NCBI GenBank assembly: GCA_046269625.1
Contig: JBJURY010000012.1
Coordinates: 62,001 to 107,996, forward strand
DNA length: 45,996 nt
Direction: 5' to 3'
DNA from: Hausera hauseri
Taxonomy: Eukaryota
A model generated the notes under the pieces. The model searched no databases, was not told the DNA's origin, and was given only the letters and a program-made list of their open reading frames with translations. The translations under genes were made by a program, and so were the position numbers. This document shows, one piece after another, positions 4,844-45,996 of this stretch. Each line of letters begins with the position of its first letter. Within the stretch, counting starts at the first letter, position 1.

Positions 4844-6044
4844 ATAATAGTCTTGTAAAAATATTTATGATTTTTTTATAATATTTTTCTTTTACAAATA
4901 ATAATATTTTTACTTCTGTAATATATAAATGTTCTATTGGATATTTTTTTTTAATATTTGTTATTAATCTATTAATATTATATTTGCTAATAATAAAATT
5001 TAATAATGTTATTTTTATTAATATTTTTCTATTAATATAAGAACAATATCTGCTAAAATTATTTATATAATAATTATATTTACTATTAATAGCTTTGTCA
5101 ATTAAATCATTACTATCATTTAATTTAATGGATAATAAATAAATAGTATTATTATTTATCTTAAAATATGATATGATGTCTGATATTTTATATATTTTAT
5201 ATATATTATTATTACATAACCTATATTTATTACTTAATATACATCTTATAAAATATACCTTTTGATAAGTGATATATTTGTTTTTTTTACTAAAAGTTAT
5301 ATCAGTACCTGAAGTAAAATCTTTTTTCATATTTTTATTTTTAAAGCTTGATAAAATTTTTAATTTTACTTTATATTTTATACAGTTTTTAACAGACCTA
5401 AATTGTAAAACTTTTGCTCCGTTACTTGTTAGTTCTAATATATCTATAGGTTCTATAAATTTTATTCTTTTTGCTTTCTTAAACTTATTAGGATCAAGAT
5501 TATAAACTCCATCCACATCTGTATAAATATAACAAAAATTACTATTCATTATATAGCTTAATATAATAGCAGTATAATCAGATCCTCCTCTACCTAAGGT
5601 ATGAATATTATTATTATTACTATCAATACCATAATATCCAGTTACAATAACTATATAATTTTTTTTTAAATATTTATTAATCTTAGTTTTATTTATTGAT
5701 CCTATTTTAGAATCCCCATATTTACCTTTTGTGAATATGGGGATTTGCCATGAATTCAAAGATACAGATCTAGCTCCATATTTATTTAAAAATATACTTA
5801 ATAAACTACAAGAGATCTGTTCACCAGATGAAACTAATAAATCTTTTTCTCTTTCTATTGAATTATTAATATAACCAATTTTATTATATAAACCAAGTAA
5901 ATTATTAGTCGTATTTCCCATAGCGGATACAACTATTATTAACTTAATATTATTTTTATACCAATGTATTATTTTTTTAGCTATAAATTTAATCTTTTTT
6001 AAACTAGATAATGAAGATCCACCAAATTTCAACACTATTAACAT
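4842..6044 (-). CDS. lysC: aspartate kinase
   Basis: VLKFGGSS, VVSAMG, TLGRGGSDYTA, TDVDGVY..DP. Confidence 0.95.
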   Translation of the reverse strand: MLIVLKFGGSSLSSLKKIKFIAKKIIHWYKNNIKLIIVVSAMGNTTNNLLGLYNKIGYINNSIEREKDLLVSSGEQISCSLLSIFLNKYGARSVSLNSWQIPIFTKGKYGDSKIGSINKTKINKYLKKNYIVIVTGYYGIDSNNNNIHTLGRGGSDYTAIILSYIMNSNFCYIYTDVDGVYNLDPNKFKKAKRIKFIEPIDILELTSNGAKVLQFRSVKNCIKYKVKLKILSSFKNKNMKKDFTSGTDITFSKKNKYITYQKVYFIRCILSNKYRLCNNNIYKIYKISDIISYFKINNNTIYLLSIKLNDSNDLIDKAINSKYNYYINNFSRYCSYINRKILIKITLLNFIISKYNINRLITNIKKKYPIEHLYITEVKILLFVKEKYYKKIINIFTRLL

Positions 6045-6958
6045 TTCAATAATATATAAAAAACATTTATTTTAAACAGCAAAACTTTATTTGCTAATTT
6101 AATTATATTTATTTTATTTATAAAACAATTAATATTTTTAAAGGTATTATATATAGTATTATTAATAATATTATTTTTTAAAAAAATATATCTAAAAATA
6201 TTTATTATTCTTTTATTTTTTCTTAAATTATTCATTATTATATCTTTTTTTGCAATATAATTATTTAAATTAATAAATTCATATAATCTTTTATTTAATC
6301 TATTTATATTATATATTCTATCACCAAAATATTTATATAAAATATTATTATATAAATATCTTACTATATTTCTTTTATATTGAAAATTTATATTAGAATT
6401 ATCGAAAATATAATTTTTTTGTTTATTTATTTCTAACATCCTAATCCTAGAAAGGGATAATAAAGGTCTAATTAAGGTTATATATTTTAGTTTAGTTTTA
6501 TATTTCATATTTATTAATCCTCTAATTCCTGTACCTCTTAATATTCTTAATATAAAATTTTCAATATAATCATTATAATTATGCCCTAAAAAATAATACT
6601 TTATTTTATTTTTTAAATAAATATTTAATAAACAATTGTAACGATATTTTCTAGCAGCGGATTCCAACCCATATAACTTAATATATTTATATTTTATTTT
6701 TACTCTCTTATATATAATATTCATATCTCTCTTTTTACATATTTCCTTTATATATTTTTCCCATAATTTACTTTTATTATTTAATAAATGATTAATATAT
6801 ATTATATATATATTTTTTTTAAATATATTAAAATATTTTAATATATAGTCTAGTAGGTAATTAGAATCATATCCTCCACTAAAACATATACCAATTTTAT
6901 TTTTACTAATTATATTATATATATCGTCTTTAATGTATTTATCTGTGAATAATAACAT
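6038..6958 (-). CDS. tilS: tRNA(Ile)-lysidine synthetase
   Basis: SGGYDS PP-loop, ESAARKYRY, GHNYND, RGTG, IRPLL. Confidence 0.93.
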   Translation of the reverse strand: MLLFTDKYIKDDIYNIISKNKIGICFSGGYDSNYLLDYILKYFNIFKKNIYIIYINHLLNNKSKLWEKYIKEICKKRDMNIIYKRVKIKYKYIKLYGLESAARKYRYNCLLNIYLKNKIKYYFLGHNYNDYIENFILRILRGTGIRGLINMKYKTKLKYITLIRPLLSLSRIRMLEINKQKNYIFDNSNINFQYKRNIVRYLYNNILYKYFGDRIYNINRLNKRLYEFINLNNYIAKKDIIMNNLRKNKRIINIFRYIFLKNNIINNTIYNTFKNINCFINKINIIKLANKVLLFKINVFYILLKC

Positions 6959-7820
6959 GAATAAAATAAAAGGAATAATTACTGCATTAATAACCCCATT
7001 TAAAAAAAATAAAAATATTGATTATATTTCCTTATATAATCTATTAAGATATCAAATAAATAATAATATAAAAAAGTTCGTTATATTAGGAACAACCGGA
7101 GAATCTACTAGTTTAACAATAACAGAAAAGATTAAAATGTTAAGTTTTATAAGAAAAAAATTTAAAAATATTAAAATAATATCTGGATCTTGTTATAATA
7201 GTATAAGTAATACAATATACTTGAACAATAGGATTAAAAAATATTCTAATTATATATTACAAATAGTACCTTATTATTTAAAACCTAATCAAAAAGGAAT
7301 ATATTTGTATATCAAAAAGATATGTTTGTATACTAATACACCTATTATTATTTATAATGTTGAATATAGAACAGGAATAGTTTTAAAAAGAAAAACATTA
7401 TTAAAATTATCTAAAATAAATAATATAATAGGTATAAAATATTCATGTTTAAATATAAAAAAAATAACACATATAATAGCCTTTATAAAAAAGGAAAACA
7501 GAAAGTTTTTATTCTTTTGTGGAGATGATAAATATATTATAAATATATTAAAAAAAAGTGACGGTGCAATATCAATACTTTCTAATTATAACCCAGGAAT
7601 AATAAATAAAATATATTCTTGTATTAAACAGAAAAGAAATATCAATAGTATTAAATTATTAAATAAACAAATTAAAATATTAAGCTTAGAAATTAATCCA
7701 GTTATAATCAAATACATATGTTATTTAAAAAAAATAATATCTAATTATATGGTAAGATTACCGTTGATTAGTATAAATAAAAGAAATAAAGTAATAATAA
7801 ATAATTTGAAAGGAAGATAA
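6957..7820 (+). CDS. dapA: 4-hydroxy-tetrahydrodipicolinate synthase
   Basis: ALITPF, GTTGES, PYY, YNV, IGIK; start moved to MNKIKG. Confidence 0.95.
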
Positions 7821-8338
7821 TGAAAGAAAAAAGTTATTTTATAATAGAAGCAGGGGTAGGAGGTAAAGATTCTTATGGTTGTTTACTACTATTAAAAAAA
7901 ATGTATATAAAATATTTAAATAGAAATAAAATAATATATAATATAATAATAAATACTATAAGAACATTAATTATTAATATAAAAGATATTAAATTTCTTA
8001 GATATGAGGTAGGGATTCATAGGGTGCAAAGAGTACCTAAGACGGAAAAGTTTAATAGAATCCATACATCAATAGTATCAGTCGATATAATTAATAGAAT
8101 CCCTACAAAAGATACTATTATAATTAATAAAAAAGATATTATTATAGAAACATTTAAATCCTCTGGAGCAGGAGGACAACATATTAATAAAACTAACTCA
8201 GCGGTAAGAATAAAACATTTACCTACTGGTTTAAAGGTAGAATGTCAGAAAGAAAGATCACAGTTCTTAAATAAAAAAGAAGGATTGAAAATATTGGAGA
8301 ATAAAATAATATATGAAGAACATACTAATAAAAAATAG
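7820..8338 (+). CDS. prfA: peptide chain release factor 1, truncated (172 aa)
   Basis: [10 protein letters not shown] (RF1 PxT motif), [24 protein letters not shown]. Confidence 0.88.
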
Positions 8339-9359
8339 TTTTTATAAAATAAATTATTTCTTTTATCTTATTATATTTACTAAATGATATCCTAACAGAA
8401 TTATTTATATATTTTTTTTTTAATTTTATCTTCCTTAATATAAAAGATATATTATTAGAATTACAAGTAGAATTTTTCGAATATGCAGTTTTAATATTAT
8501 AAAATTTATTATTATTTTTAATATATCCAAAGTTAATTATATCAGGAATTTTATTATATATACAACCATTTATAAAATATTCACTATAACTTAATATAGT
8601 AAATAGTAATAAATTACTTAAACAAATAATTGATTTTATTTTTCTAATTATCTTAATTGTTTTAGCTAACCCTAATATTTGATAAGTAGGTAAAGTACCT
8701 GGAAACAATATATGTAGATCTTTATTATAAAATAATATTTCTTTTTGTATCCTTTTCCTAATAAATATAACACCTATACCTTTAGGACCGTATATTTTAT
8801 GCGTTGAGAATGATAGAATATCTATTCCTATTCTTTTAAGATTAATAGTAATTTTTCCTATACATTGAGTATAGTCTATAAAATATATATTTCGTTTTAT
8901 TATATTAATGCTTTGTCTCACACCAATTTCATTATTTATTATATTAATAATAGCATTACTAAGTATATTTTTATTATTATATATACCTCTCTTATTATTG
9001 TTAATATAATATATTTTATAGTGTTTTCTTCCCGTTTTATTCTTTAAACTTTTTATATATTTTAATATTGTAGGATGTTCTAAGTTTGATATAGATATAT
9101 TTTTATTTAGATTTATTAAATACTTAATAGCAATAATATTACCTTGTGTTGACCCAGATGTAAAAAATATTTCATTTGATTTACATTTTAAATAATCTGC
9201 AATTATAGTTTTTGCTTTATTAATTAATTTATTTACTTCGAAACCTAATATATGATTAGAAAAGCTATTAGCATAGTATTTAAAACTATTATTAATTATA
9301 TTTTTAACTTTAATATCAATATCAGTAGTTGAAGCATTATCAAAATAAATAATTTTCAT
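8325..9359 (-). CDS. iscS: cysteine desulfurase
   Basis: [32 protein letters not shown], catalytic-loop Cys (STC). Confidence 0.9.
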
Positions 9360-9377: not shown

Positions 9378-9601
9378 ACTGAAGTGATGAAATAGGTAAA
9401 CATAGTGGACTTAGTTTTTTTGAGTGCTTGTAAATAATAAGTAGAATTTTTCCCTAATCGGAAGAATTTAAATAATAAAATTATTTTTATAATTCCGAAC
9501 TAATAAAGAATGTGTAGAGACTATATAGGAAAAGTAATAAGATATAGTCCAGATAGAAAATCCACAGCGTAAGCTTGTCGGTTCAATTCCGATCTTCAGT
9601 A
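9378..9601 (+). tRNA. tRNA-Leu(TAA), intron-containing (exons 9378-9412 and 9557-9601)
   Basis: ACTGAAG/CTTCAGT acceptor; joined exons give GTGGA-CTTAAAA-TCCAC; AGC-GTAA-GCT variable arm; GTTCAATTC T loop. Confidence 0.92.
9413..9556 (+). ncRNA. group I intron (144 nt) inserted after U34 of tRNA-Leu(UAA)
   Basis: P1 with U.G at the splice site, P3, P4, R element GTAGAGACTA, S element AAGATATAGTCC, terminal G9556. Confidence 0.9.
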
Positions 9602-10185
9602 TGAAAAAAAATATACATATAACATCAGGTAGATTAATTAGTAATAAAATATTCTATAAAAAAGAAAATATAAATAGTATTAAAGCAACTATATCTGAGA
9701 TAAGAAAAACAATATATTTTATATTTAGAAATAATATAAAAAATTCAAAGGTATTGGATCTATTTTCTGGAACAGGAATATTAGGTATTGAAGCTTTATC
9801 AATTGGAGCAAGTGAAATAACATTTGTAGAAAAGAATAAAAAATATTGTAGTAATATTAATAAAAATATAAAAAATATTATTAATAAATTCTATCTTAAA
9901 AAAATAGTAAGTATAAAAATTTATTGTACAAATGTATTAAATTATTTAGTAAACAATAATAAATTATATGATATTATTTTTATGGATCCACCATATAAAT
10001 ATAATGATATTAATAAATTAATTAATATGATATTAATATATTTAAATAAAAAAGGATTTATATTTTTAAAAACAACTATAAATAATATAGGTAAAATAAA
10101 AGGTATAAAAAATATTAATATAAAAATATTTAAAAAGAAAAAAAGGATTAAATTTTATATAATAACAAAAAATATTAATTATTAA
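9601..10185 (+). CDS. rsmD: 16S rRNA m2G966 methyltransferase
   Basis: ITSG N-terminus, LDLFSGTG.LGIEALS.GA, DPPY. Confidence 0.9.
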   Translation: MKKNIHITSGRLISNKIFYKKENINSIKATISEIRKTIYFIFRNNIKNSKVLDLFSGTGILGIEALSIGASEITFVEKNKKYCSNINKNIKNIINKFYLKKIVSIKIYCTNVLNYLVNNNKLYDIIFMDPPYKYNDINKLINMILIYLNKKGFIFLKTTINNIGKIKGIKNINIKIFKKKKRIKFYIITKNINY

Positions 10186-28822: not shown

Positions 28823-28828
28823 AAACTT

Positions 28829-28900
28829 AACTTATAATTGGAATTGAACCAAAATCATTTTCCATACTAGAGAAAATCTTTACCTTTAAGTTATATAAGC
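28829..28900 (-). tRNA. tRNA-Thr(AGT)
   Basis: GCTTATA/TATAAGT, TTTCT-CTAGTAT-GGAAA, GTTCAATTC; occupies the Thr slot of the Tyr-Gly-Thr-tuf cluster. Confidence 0.87.
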
Positions 28901-28901
28901 T

Positions 28902-41409: not shown

Positions 41410-42150
41410 AAAAGTAAGAGTTTGATCCTGGCTCAGATTTAACGCTAGCGGTATGCATAACACATGCAAGTTTAACAATTGTTTAATTGTAGCGTACGGG
41501 TGAGTAATATATTGGAATGTAATTCAAAGATTACAATAACTTTTTGAAAAAAAAGGTAATATGTTTATAAATTCTTTTAAATTAATATAAGAAAAAAGTG
41601 TTAAATATTTTAACACGCTTTGAAAACAGCCGATACTAGATTAGTTAGTTGGTAAGATAATAGCTTACCAAGACAATGATCTATAGTTGTTCTGGAAGGA
41701 AGACCAACCACATTGGGATTGAAAAAAGGCCCAAACTCCTACGGGAGGCAGCAGTGAGGAATATTGGACAATGAGCGAAAGCTTGATCCAGCAATACCGC
41801 GTGTGTGATGAAGGTTTAACTACTGTAAAACACTTTTTTCTAGGAATAAAAAATATTTGATATATAATGAAAACACTAGAAGAATAAGTACCGGCTAATT
41901 ACGTGCCAGCAGCCGCGGTAATACGTAAGGTGCGAGCGTTAATCGGAATTATTGGGCGTAAAGAGTATGTAGGCTGAATATTAAGATATTCATAAAATCC
42001 TTATGCTCAACATAAGGAAGTGAATATTACTAATATTCTAGAATGTAAAGGGGGAGAATAGAATTCTACAAGTAGTAGTGAAATGCACAGATATGTAGAG
42101 GAATACCGAAAGCGAAAGCAATTCTTCAATTTACTATTGACGCTAAAGTA

Positions 42151-42198
<48 letters not shown>

Positions 42199-42285
42199 CT
42201 AAACGATGTTGATTAACTATTGGGTTTCTCAGTGGTGAAGCTAACGCATTAAATCAACCGCCTGGGGAGTACGATCGCAAGATTA

Positions 42286-42325
<40 letters not shown>

Positions 42326-42334
42326 TGATGTGGA

Positions 42335-42365
<31 letters not shown>

Positions 42366-42416
42366 ACTTTTGACAAAATATAAGTGATGTCCGAAAGGAA
42401 TAACGAAAATTATATA

Positions 42417-42470
<54 letters not shown>

Positions 42471-42805
42471 TGCAACGAGCGCAACCCTTTTTTTTATTAT
42501 TCTACATGAGAGAACTATAAAAATACAGCTAATTAAAATTAGAGGAAGGAAAGGATGACGTCAAGTCATCATGGCCCTTATAAGTAGGGCTTCACACGTC
42601 ATACAATGGTTAATACAAAACAAAAAAATGTAAAATTAACCTCAGTACGGATTGTATTCTGAAACTCGAATACATGAAGCAGGAATCGCTAGTAATCGTA
42701 AATCAGAATGTTACGGTGAATACGTTCTCGGGTCTTGTACACACCGCCCGTCACACCATGGAAATATGTTCTATTAGAAATAAATTAAAATAGAATATGT
42801 AACTA

Positions 42806-42851
<46 letters not shown>

Positions 42852-42860
42852 TATTAATAA
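41410..42860 (+). rRNA. rrs: 16S rRNA (ends approximate)
   Basis: AGAGTTTGATCCTGGCTCAG, GTGCCAGCAGCCGCGGTAA, AAGTCGTAACAAGGTA; GGATGATGTGGATTAATTCGATGCAAC is betaproteobacteria-like. Confidence 0.98.
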
Positions 42861-42931
42861 AGGTTTATAGCTTAAAGGTAAAGTATTGCTTTGATAAGGC
42901 AAATTTGTTGGTTCAATTCCAACTAAACCTA
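42861..42931 (+). tRNA. tRNA-Ile(GAT)
   Basis: AGGTTTA/TAAACCT, TTGCT-TTGATAA-GGCAA, GTTCAATTC. Confidence 0.95.
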
Positions 42932-44696
42932 ATAATGTTTATAGAGGATGCCTTGGCATTCAGAGGCGATGAAGGACGTATTAAAAACGAAAATTATGAG
43001 TATTAATTTAGAATCATAAGTATCCGAATTGGGAAACCAGATTTTTCATTGTTTCTACAACAAAGCTAACGTAATGAACTGAAACATCTTAGTAATTACA
43101 GGAAAAGAAATCAAGTGAGATATTTCCCAAGTAGCGGCGAGCGAAACGGAACAAGCCGATATATTTTATTATGAATATTATCATAAACTTTTTGAATATA
43201 GTGCCATAGAAGGTAAAAGCCCTGTTTGTTAAAATATTCATAAAGAACTAGATATATCAAAAATTAAAATAAAACACGAGAAATTTTATTTGAATAAGGA
43301 AGACCATTTCCTAAGGCTAAATACTACTGAATGACCGATAGTGAACTAGTACCGTAAGGGAAAGGTGAAAAGAACTTTATAAAAATGTGAAAAGATCCTG
43401 AAACTGTAAACAAAAAATCAATCAGAGCTTTTTTTAGTAATGATGTACCTTTTGTATAATGGGTCAGCGACTTATATTTAGTAGCAAGCTTAACTATAAA
43501 GGGAGGCGAAGATAATCCAAGTTTTAAATAAACGTCAAGTTTCTAAATATATACCCGAAACCAGACGATCTATCCATGAACAGAATGAAGGTATCTGAGG
43601 TTCGAACTCACTAACGTTGAAAAGTTAGGAGATGATTTATGGATAGGAGTGAAAGGCTAATCAAGTTTGGAGATAGCTGGTTCTCTTCGAAAGCTATTTA
43701 GGTAGCGTATTGTTTTAAAATTACAGGGGTAGAGCACTATATTAATAGTCTATATTATAATAAACTCCGAATACTGTTAATTTATAAAATAATAAACAGA
43801 CTATGGGTGATAACATTCATAGTCGAGAGGGAAACAACCCAGATCATAAGCTAAGGTCCCGAAATAATATCTAAGTGGTAAACGAAGTTTCAAAACAAAT
43901 ACAATTAGAAGGTAGGCTTAGAAGCAGCCATCCTTTAAAGATAGCGTAAAAGCTCACTAATATAGTTTTGATGCGCGGAAAAATAAACGGGGCTAAGATA
44001 TTTACCGAAGCTATGAATAAATTTTATTTTATGGTAGAAGAGCGTTCTGTAAATCGAAGAAGATATTTTGTGAAAAATATTGGAGATATCAGAAGTGAGA
44101 ATGCTGACATTAGTAACGATAAAGAAAGTGAAAAACTTTCTCGCCGTAAATCTAAGGTTTCCTACGCAATGTTAATCAACGTAGGGTTAATCGGTCCCTA
44201 AGATGAGGCTTCAGCGTAGTCGATGGAAATTAGGTTAATATTCCTAAATTTTTTTTAAAAGTGAAGGTATAAAATTTATACTCAGATTAGTAAATAATAA
44301 AATATTTATATATAAGTAAAACTTAGAAGATAAAAAAACTGCTTCAAATAGTTTCATTATATCCAATATATCATATTGTTAATTTGAAATAAATCTAGAA
44401 AATTACCTAAACAAATTTTAAAAAAAGCCGTACTAAAACTGACACAAGTGGATAAGAAGAGTATTCTAAGGCGCTTGAGACAACTTAGGAGAAGGAACTC
44501 GGCAAATTTGTACCGTAACTTAGGGATAAGGTATACCAAATATATAATTTATATTGGTCTAAGAAAAAAGGTAGTTGCGACTGTTTAATAAAAACACAGC
44601 ACTCTGCAAACATGAAAATGGAAGTATAGGGTGTGACGCCTGCCCAGTGCTGAAAAACTAAAATTTATTTGTGAATAGCAAATCTATTAAATCTCA

Positions 44697-44782
<86 letters not shown>

Positions 44783-44848
44783 AACTGCACTGTCTCCTCC
44801 TAAGGCTCAGTGAAATTGAAATGTTCGTGAAGATGCGAACTACTTGCG

Positions 44849-44882
<34 letters not shown>

Positions 44883-45169
44883 ACCATATATTGTGAAGAC
44901 TATTACCACGTGTAGAATATGTGGGAGAATAATTTTTAATTATTCAACAGTGAAATACCACTCTTGATAATACGAAACACTAATTTTATACCTTAGATCA
45001 GGTAAAAAAAAAATATATGAATGACAGTTTGACTGGGGCGGTCTCCTCCTAAAAAGTAACGGAGGCGTTTACAAAGGTTGGCTACTCCGAGATGGAAATT
45101 CGGAGGATAGGGCAAAGCCACAAGCCAGCTTTACTGCAAGACATGCAAGTCGAGCAGTTGCGAAAGCAG
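42932..45169 (+). rRNA. rrl: 23S rRNA, 3'-incomplete; last ~100 nt probably from another bacterium
   Basis: GGATGCCTTGG, GAACTGAAACATCT, GTAACTATAACGGTCCTAAGGTAGCGAAATTCCTTG, GACTGGGGCGG; homology stops in domain V. Confidence 0.95.
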
Positions 45170-45268
45170 AAGTACTCAATCGACACCTCTGAAATAAAGC
45201 CCTACTTCGAACTCTGGAGAGTTCTTGAAAAAGGCGTGTTTTATGCCGCAAATAGGCTTTACGGTTTG
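45152..45268 (+). other. fragment of a bacterial M3 (Dcp-like) metallopeptidase gene, foreign to this genome
   Basis: EQLRKQKYSIDTSEIKPYFELWRVLEKGVFYAANRLYGL matches the recalled Dcp pattern KPYFE..VL..GVFYAA..LYG. Confidence 0.7.
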
Positions 45269-45319
45269 GACACTGCCATGGTGCTCCTCCATGTTCCTCT
45301 CATGACACTAACATGTTAG

Positions 45320-45996
45320 CACCATGATGATAAATCACCAACATCAGATTGCGGTTCGAGAGAAAACGATATTAAATCTCCTCCGGCAGCTCATCAAGCG
45401 AATTTCAATGGTGTTGCAGGTGCAAATGCACTGGGCTCTATCAAACATGGTATTGCGATAAATAACATTTCTCCAATAGTAGCACCAACAAATATCACCC
45501 ATTTAGTTGGTTCATTGCCCGTAACATGGAATACAGGACAAGCAATCACGGCCTTGTTGTCGTCAAATGCCGGAAACAATCCTTTGACGATTCTAACTCG
45601 AAAGGATCTTTCTTCAAATTCCCAGGGTATTACCAATTCTGTTCAAAACCAATCGACAATCAATAACAATAACATCCTGACACTTTCCCCACAATTGAAT
45701 CATCTCATTGCTGCTCCGTCACTTGCCGGTTGTCTTTCTACTGTCGTAACCTCTTTGCCGACCTCCGGGTCGAATCAGATCTCAAATGGCGATGTGCCGT
45801 CCAATCAGATGGTTGCGTTGAGTAACATCATATCCACTCTCAACAACGCTCTTGTTGCCAGCCAACAGCAAAATCAACCACAACCACAGCCACAACAACA
45901 ACAGCAGCAACAGCAACAACAACAACATCAACAGTCGTCTCAGCAGGTTGGCCAGAAACAAAGTTCACAAGTCACAAATATCAATGCGATTTTGAT
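45320..45996 (+). other. eukaryotic (fungal-like) exon encoding a low-complexity S/N/Q-rich protein, open to window end
   Basis: Stop-free frame from 45320, preceded by CTAAC (45308-45312) and TAG acceptor; GC far above host. Confidence 0.65.
45863..45934 (+). repeat. CAA/CAG polyglutamine tract
   Basis: QQQNQPQPQPQQQQQQQQQQQHQQ. Confidence 0.9.

Follow-up and report, generated by a model that had tools for sequence, protein, structure and literature searches.

The window analyzed here, by which we mean the whole stretch of 45,996 nucleotides at G000:C12:62001–107996, is part of a contig of 107,996 bp with a GC content of ~20% that lies within an 869-Mb host assembly. The EF-Tu encoded on this contig shares 69–74% identity with that of Candidatus Vidania, whose genomes span 104–136 kb, and ~71% with that of Zinderia, and judged by these sequences the contig belongs to a planthopper symbiont, a betaproteobacterium resembling Vidania; on the same EF-Tu identity to Vidania, an origin from a plastid or apicoplast was rejected. 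The genes of the contig are densely packed, the standard genetic code fits, and the contig is not closed, starting in a TA-rich repeat. Between the genes for a cysteine desulfurase (IscS) and for rsmD, the window carries at 9378–9601 a class II tRNA-Leu(UAA) gene that is interrupted between U34 and A35 by 144 nt. The coordinates of these features, and of those discussed in the following, are collected in Table 1.

Table 1. Coordinates of the split tRNA genes, their introns, and related features (window numbering unless a contig or L number is given; ↓ marks the 5′ splice site).
Feature	Coordinates	Strand	Description and basis
Cysteine desulfurase gene (IscS)	8325–9359	−	flanks split tRNA-Leu gene
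tRNA-Leu exon 1	9378–9412	+	acceptor 5′ strand, D arm, anticodon stem 5′ strand, C32 U33 U34; sequence, ARAGORN -i
tRNA-Leu exon 2, first part	9557–9601	+	A35 A36 A37 A38, anticodon stem 3′ strand, 11-nt variable arm
tRNA-Leu exon 2, rest	within 9557–9601	+	T arm, acceptor 3′ strand, discriminator A; sequence, ARAGORN -i
rsmD	9601–10185	+	flanks split tRNA-Leu gene
Group I-derived intron	9413–9556 (A9413 to omega-G9556)	+	RF00028, R1, core columns
P1	9409–9414 / 9420–9425	+	ACUU↓AG with guide UUGAGU; 4/4 model pairs canonical
P2	9426–9430 / 9438–9442	+	5–7 bp, loop UAAAUAA; MFE fold, R1 consensus alignment
P3	9448–9453 / 9528–9533	+	UUUUCC with GGAAAA; 6/6 pairs canonical; MFE fold
P4	9458–9463 / 9493–9498	+	6/6 pairs canonical; MFE fold
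P5	9470–9476 / 9480–9486	+	A/U-only; MFE fold
P6 stub	9499–9513	+	AC...GU, 2 bp, P6a extension deleted; R1 and Rfam alignments
J6/7 and P7 5′ strand	9514–9523	+	GUAGAGACUA; identical to the invariant block in 24/24 comparators
Linker at P8 site	9534–9538	+	GUAAU, 5 nt; R1 and Rfam alignments
J8/7 and P7 3′ strand	9539–9550	+	AAGAUAUAGUCC; J8/7 AAGAUA (9539–9544), then UAGUCC; invariant comparator columns
Tail	9551–9556	+	AGAUAG, omega-G last; 5 nt (9551–9555) from P7 to terminal G
Split tRNA(CAU) gene	contig 51474–51686 (L007:1474–1686)	−	ARAGORN -i
Second intron	contig 51514–51653 (L007:1514–1653)	−	140 nt, after U33, G at end
tRNA-Leu(UAG)	L006:8430–8502
tRNA-Leu(CAA)	L005:5071–5147 = C12:35071–35147	+	RF00005, 37.8 bits
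P8-less group I intron	L152:2413–2617		91.7 bits
P8-less group I intron	L157:960–1108	−	56.4 bits; P2 missing too
P8-less group I intron	L111:1413–1568	−	37.4 bits

Judged from the coordinates of both exons, the tRNA-Leu gene forms a cloverleaf with an acceptor stem of 7 bp (ACUGAAG/CUUCAGU), a D stem of 3 bp, an anticodon stem made of GUGGA (9405–9409) and UCCAC (9561–9565), and a T arm (GUCGG/CCGAU), to which the features of a class II tRNA-Leu are added, namely a long variable arm (11 nt), a UAA anticodon, and a discriminator A. Without 9413–9556, the anticodon loop reads CU-UAA-AA. At default stringency, ARAGORN in intron mode (-i) calls a tRNA-Leu(taa) with a 144-nt intron at precisely these bounds (gene at contig 71377–71602) and puts the intron at position 37; over the 108 kb, it makes just one further intron-bearing call. 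At this locus, neither plain ARAGORN nor Rfam at the gathering threshold finds the gene or its intron. A preliminary description of this DNA had proposed that the insert starts after U34 and ends in G, at the insertion site of the cyanobacterial/plastid trnL(UAA) intron, and that its excision yields a perfect anticodon arm, with the intron mode of ARAGORN named as a check. All of this holds, as U9412 precedes the insert, G9556 is its last nucleotide, the CUU/AAAA context matches that site, and the sequence and ARAGORN -i agree on the restored arm.

The insert can be followed as a group I structure from one splice site to the other. In P1, the wobble U9412·G9422 marks the 5′ splice site, and the U-run in its loop (9415–9419) could pair with the AAAA of exon 2 to form P10; an almost identical P1 is present in the phage intron L060. 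The loop of P2 is without the GAAA tetraloop of the comparators, P3 has U-A in place of two of their C-G pairs, and J4/5 and J5/4 (inside 9458–9498) are A-rich. P7 comprises G9517, the bulged A9518, and the pairing of 9519–9523 with 9545–9550, G9519 being part of the guanosine-site pair. Present together, then, are a P1 with its U·G, an omega-G, a P7 with bulged A, J6/7 and J8/7, and a P3/P7 pseudoknot with a P4–P6 domain in which P6 has only 2 bp. A nested minimum-free-energy (MFE) fold gives P2, P3, P4, and P5 unaided (z = −2.9), and the coordinates assigned in the preliminary description to P1, P2, P3, P4, P5, the stub P6, P7, and J8/7 each hold in the sequence.

The Rfam model RF00028 aligns end to end at 9403–9565, with a score of 10.5 bits (E 3.4 over 4227 families) that is below the Rfam gathering threshold of 50 bits. 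The Rfam search proposed earlier thus barely registers the intron. A second covariance model, R1, was derived from 24 tRNA group I introns on phage contigs and contains no sequence of the present genome; its sources were IMG/VR introns with the same P7 motif, of which the tRNA-embedded ones were kept, 24 were aligned, and the consensus P1 structure was corrected. On the whole contig, the top match to R1 is the tRNA-Leu intron (9405–9609; 38.9 bits, E 1.8e-8), followed by the second intron described below (25.9 bits, E 4.4e-5) and then by a match of 8.1 bits. From P1 to the end of P7, the tRNA-Leu intron retains 39 of the 44 core columns that are invariant among the comparators, including 16/19 G/C columns, and the second intron retains 35/44 (15/19 G/C), in a genome of 20% GC. 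Base composition alone predicts ~12 matches in these columns; since the alignment was optimized, the nominal probability of such a difference comes out too small, but the contrast is large. Furthermore, relative to the phage introns, P3 and P4 carry substitutions in both partners of a pair (e.g., C-G to U-A), and these compensatory changes leave all six pairs of each helix intact. The 10-mer GTAGAGACTA, which spans J6/7 and the 5′ strand of P7 (Table 1), has exactly two occurrences on the contig, one per intron.

A chance hairpin was ruled out by the R1 E-values, and the group I identification made in the preliminary description is upheld by the R1 homology. On sequence and predicted structure, the tRNA-Leu insert is a group I intron of subgroup IC3 and of the tRNA-Leu.3Ug type. 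Leu.3Ug is the classical type, found in Proteobacteria too, in the survey of Williams 2020 (bioRxiv 10.1101/2020.01.27.920355), which mapped 5,292 tRNA group I introns using a screen of at least 18 Rfam bits; since 10.5 bits is below that value, the tRNA-Leu intron would escape such a screen.

The preliminary description had also reported that P8 and P9 are absent and had called the intron ultra-miniature, and both points are borne out. Between the 3′ strand of P3 and J8/7, there is only the linker GUAAU, compared to a P8 of about 20–57 nt in the comparators, and the P8 region shrinks from 21 model positions to 3 nt in the R1 alignment and from 57 to 0 in the Rfam alignment. Downstream of P7, the comparators read ...AUAGUCC-AGA-(P9, ~45 nt)-UAAG/AAAAUC and the window reads ...AUAGUCC-AGA-UAG/AAAAUC (slash, 3′ splice site); the window joins AGA to UAG where the comparators carry P9, and this helix is thus cleanly excised. 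IC3 introns are held by two tetraloop-receptor clamps, as seen in the Azoarcus structure, and P8 is reckoned part of the conserved group I core. Here, the L2-P8 and L9-P5 contacts are without a counterpart, L2 being UAAAUAA. With P8, P9, and both tetraloop-receptor contacts gone, and with P8 reckoned part of the core, autonomous activity is doubtful.

Our size comparison covers, among the matches listed, ~75 introns that lie in tRNA genes and carry this P7 motif (67 from IMG/VR, 8 from metagenomes); the shortest of those listed measures 178 nt (range 178–877 nt), compared to 144 and 140 nt for the two introns here, which are thus smaller than every comparator collected. Numerous metagenomic hits to the P7 pattern whose spacers measure 10–17 nt look like chance and were excluded from this comparison. 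The loss of P8 alone is not unique, as three metagenomic/viral group I introns (L152, L157, and L111 in Table 1) have ~5 nt in its place, and none of the collected metagenomic/viral comparators listed is without both P8 and P9. We know of no description of natural P8-less group I introns, and the literature that we searched gave no stated smallest natural group I intron.

The other intron-bearing ARAGORN call lies outside the window on the same contig, where a tRNA(CAU) gene is split by 140 nt. RF00028 again aligns end to end (15.9 bits), and this second intron has the exact GUAGAGACUAUA block, a P3 of 6–7 bp, and AUAGUCC in common with the tRNA-Leu intron. It has neither P5 nor P9 and its tail is UUUUG, but a 5-bp, A/U-only P8 is retained, so that the core is common to both introns and the peripheral losses differ: the tRNA-Leu intron has P5 and no P8, the second intron P8 and no P5. 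Its MFE carries no significant thermodynamic signal (z = −0.43). The insertion site is the same as that of the phage tRNA-Met(CAU) intron L087. As for the identity of the split tRNA, the contig's uninterrupted tRNA(CAU) is initiator-like, its anticodon stem having GGG on the 5′ side, and the window encodes at 6041–6958 (−) a TilS, a 306-aa PP-loop protein with a TilS N-terminal domain match of 142.7 bits (cutoff 93.6). A genome that encodes TilS needs a tRNA-Ile2(CAU) substrate, and because the intact tRNA(CAU) is initiator-like and TilS is encoded, the split tRNA(CAU) is probably tRNA-Ile2. ATA is the commonest codon that we counted, with 2747 occurrences. We note that another TilS-like gene is found at G000:C28172:2601–3122 on another contig of the assembly and is presumably that of a co-symbiont. 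The presence of a second intron of equally reduced design strengthens a functional reading of the first.

The second locus also bears on whether the reduced design could be an artefact, either because an assembly collapse deleted P8 and P9 or because A/T-rich DNA resembles a group I core by mere coincidence. All sampled words of the locus are contained in nine DNA sequencing runs and in no RNA run, and the reads of four of the DNA runs place on the locus only A/T-rich fragments of 19–38 nt, with no contig across the gene; the single joint seen in these reads, 9494>9641, has one side of 21 nt and differs from the splice junction. This lack of reads spanning the gene, together with an Rfam score far under the gathering threshold, leaves some room for such an artefact. 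We nevertheless consider it extremely improbable, in light of the R1 E-values obtained for both introns, of deletions without flanking repeats, of intron bounds that restore the anticodon loops exactly, and of two loci that follow a common reduced plan, yet differ in sequence and in the parts lost. The tRNA-Leu insert is a real, if extreme, variant of a known intron class, and probably a functional one.

This reading is in line with the demand for the tRNA concerned. Over the 85 ORFs that reach 150 aa or more, TTA accounts for 69.8% of the Leu codons, as the dominant Leu codon that it had been taken to be from the outset, and for 6.4% of all codons. The two other tRNA-Leu genes, with UAG and CAA anticodons, cannot read UUA by standard wobble rules, and no second UUA-reading tRNA was found on the contig, a point that the preliminary description had singled out for checking; since the contig is not closed, a further tRNA could lie in the gap. 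We note in passing that tRNA-Leu(CAA) abuts tRNA-Ser(UGA) and is overlooked by ARAGORN in its default mode. For four published Vidania genomes, Table S4 of PMC8406288 gives leuS and tilS as functional in 4/4, a tRNA with TAA anticodon in 0/4, and a single tRNA with CAT anticodon per genome. This pattern would be expected if both split genes were general to Vidania and had been overlooked by tRNAscan-SE. Introns are not mentioned in the Vidania papers that we consulted, and our literature search found no paper tying group I introns to Vidania, Nasuia, Zinderia, Carsonella, or Sulcia.

The same observations can be set against the possibility that the introns are dead relics, in which catalysis was lost with P8 and P9, the split genes have become pseudogenes, and the decoding of UUA (and of AUA or AUG) is left to tRNAs imported from the host or the co-symbiont, as in mitochondria. 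Every peripheral stabilizer is missing along with P8, the runs matched to the locus contain DNA only, and Vidania lineages have lost many translation genes, among them aminoacyl-tRNA synthetases, for which supply by the host has been proposed (PMC12992758). However, the core positions that are retained, including those that are G or C, would hardly have survived neutrally in a fast-evolving genome of 20% GC, and such retention would have had to happen twice, independently. Moreover, the tRNA exons are perfect, and keeping leuS and tilS, as in the published Vidania genomes, or tilS, as here, would make little sense without tRNA substrates. Taking both sides into account, we consider a relic unlikely.

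We instead favor, with a probability of roughly 70%, the reading that both introns are still removed by group I chemistry, probably with the help of a protein, because the catalytic positions are conserved, and are so in two introns, even though the genome drifts to A/T. In this reading, the 144-nt intron derives from the tRNA-Leu group I (IC3) intron that is classical in bacteria and plastids, deletions having taken all of the periphery, namely the GNRA tetraloops of P2 and P9, P6a, the whole of P8, and the whole of P9; erosion of the genome in this lineage, to which the preliminary description attributed the reduction, may have been the cause. The catalytic core is kept nearly letter for letter, comprising P1 with its U·G, the P3/P7 pseudoknot, P4 with an A-rich J4/5, J6/7, J8/7, the guanosine pocket with its bulged A and G-C pair, and the terminal G. 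Splicing would proceed by the two usual transesterifications, with guanosine attacking after U9412 in the first step and the exons being ligated after G9556 in the second, to give a tRNA that decodes UUA. With none of the known tertiary clamps left, the core would most likely need a protein or chaperone, supplied by symbiont or host, in order to fold, instead of relying on the RNA by itself.

A stronger role for proteins is conceivable, in which an endonuclease/ligase of the host or the symbiont excises the insert and the conserved core is merely a recognition structure. Such a pathway would suit a symbiont that depends heavily on its host, and an insert whose activity as a ribozyme is in doubt now that P8 and P9 are lost. 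Yet conservation has fallen on precisely the catalytic positions (the splice-site U·G, the terminal G, the bulged-A guanosine pocket, J6/7, and J8/7). Furthermore, protein tRNA-splicing enzymes act at 37/38, and not at 34/35 and 33/34 as would be required here; a protein-spliced tRNA intron was rejected as a candidate on account of this wrong insertion site. We know of no bacterial protein pathway of this kind, and rate this explanation as very improbable. Returning to removal by group I chemistry, we also lean, with less assurance, toward a more far-reaching version, in which the 144- and 140-nt elements are ribozymes active in vivo and the shortest natural group I introns, without P9 or the clamps and in one case without P8. 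They would have been maintained over hundreds of millions of years, in a bacterial genome that ranks among the smallest, because two of its busiest tRNAs depend on them, and a recruited protein of the symbiont or the host would probably prop them up.

Comparison with known systems helps to place the two introns. With the bacterial, cyanobacterial, and plastid tRNA-Leu(UAA) introns (IC3), the tRNA-Leu intron shares the CUU/AAAA site, the U at −1, and the terminal G, as well as the P1 guide UUGAGUGC, J6/7-P7 GUAGAGACUA, and J8/7-P7 AAGAUAUAGUCC followed by AGA. It differs from this classical intron in its size (144 nt, against 178–877 nt in the listed comparators), in residing in an obligate insect endosymbiont, in having no P8, P9, or GNRA tetraloops, and in a P6 of only 2 bp. 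The Azoarcus pre-tRNA-Ile(CAU) intron, at ~205 nt, is the model compact self-splicing group I intron. It resembles the present case in its betaproteobacterial host, its position in a tRNA anticodon loop, its IC3 subgroup, and its compact core, and the second intron is also in a tRNA(CAU), but the Azoarcus intron is inserted after U36 and the Vidania-like one after U33. Azoarcus also has P8, P9, and the L2-P8 and L9-P5 clamps, both of which are missing here. The P8-less introns L152, L157, and L111 are similar in the sequences of P7 and J8/7 and in having ~5 nt from the P3 3′ strand to J8/7, but their helices are G/C-rich and they retain a P9 or a hairpin resembling it. Among engineered minimal group I ribozymes, such as the sunY “miniribozymes” of ~180 nt and the Tetrahymena deletion series, peripheral helices can be removed with some activity left, usually at high Mg2+ or with helpers; in contrast to the present introns, these are laboratory constructs and longer than 144 nt. 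Finally, the intervening sequence of the apicoplast trnL(UAA), a predicted group I intron (PMC3064897), occupies the identical site and is likewise found in an extremely A/T-rich, much reduced, and host-dependent genome, but the apicoplast is an organelle of cyanobacterial descent and the present genome that of a betaproteobacterial symbiont.

If both introns still splice, they would be much smaller than all tRNA group I introns among the comparators listed, and the lower bound for group I ribozymes would shift to a natural core of ~140 nt without P9 (and in one case without P8), with a minimal catalytic core smaller than the engineered versions have suggested. Such introns would provide a compact model for telling elements that are essential to catalysis from those whose role proteins can take over, and would point to a possible splicing helper encoded by the host or the symbiont. 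They would also indicate that self-splicing introns can outlast extreme genome reduction inside indispensable genes. The published Vidania tRNA inventories would then omit two essential genes, which would explain annotations with leuS and tilS, no tRNA-Leu(UAA), and a single tRNA(CAU). For annotation, we note that standard tRNA and Rfam screens overlook such genes, and that the intron mode of ARAGORN and a subgroup-specific covariance model detect them.

Several further observations concern the contig itself. The rsmD ATG (9601–9603) starts at the discriminator base of tRNA-Leu, such that the 3′ end of the tRNA shares 1 base with the ORF. A search with the IscS protein against genome contigs matched only distant phyla, at 24–30% identity. 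The first 180 positions of the contig (C12:1–180, L002:1–180) consist of low-complexity sequence, a long (TAA/TA)n tract at which assembly of the circular genome probably broke off; neither 5S rRNA nor tRNA-Ala was detected on the contig. In the rRNA region (window 41410–45996), the genes for 16S rRNA, tRNA-Ile(GAU), and 23S rRNA abut or overlap without spacers, the 16S end at 42861 being the start of the tRNA, which ends at 42931, with the 23S match running from 42921. Four tRNAs have A34 anticodons (Thr-AGU, Val-AAC, Ser-AGA, and Arg-ACG; window 28828–28901, L004:6838–6910, L006:8344–8428, and L005:4899–4973), of which bacteria usually have Arg-ACG only. Finally, the release-factor gene at window 7820–8338 (+) encodes just 172 aa, in which the PCRF and RF-1 domains are both partial, and TGA is the stop codon in 19 of the 85 long ORFs.
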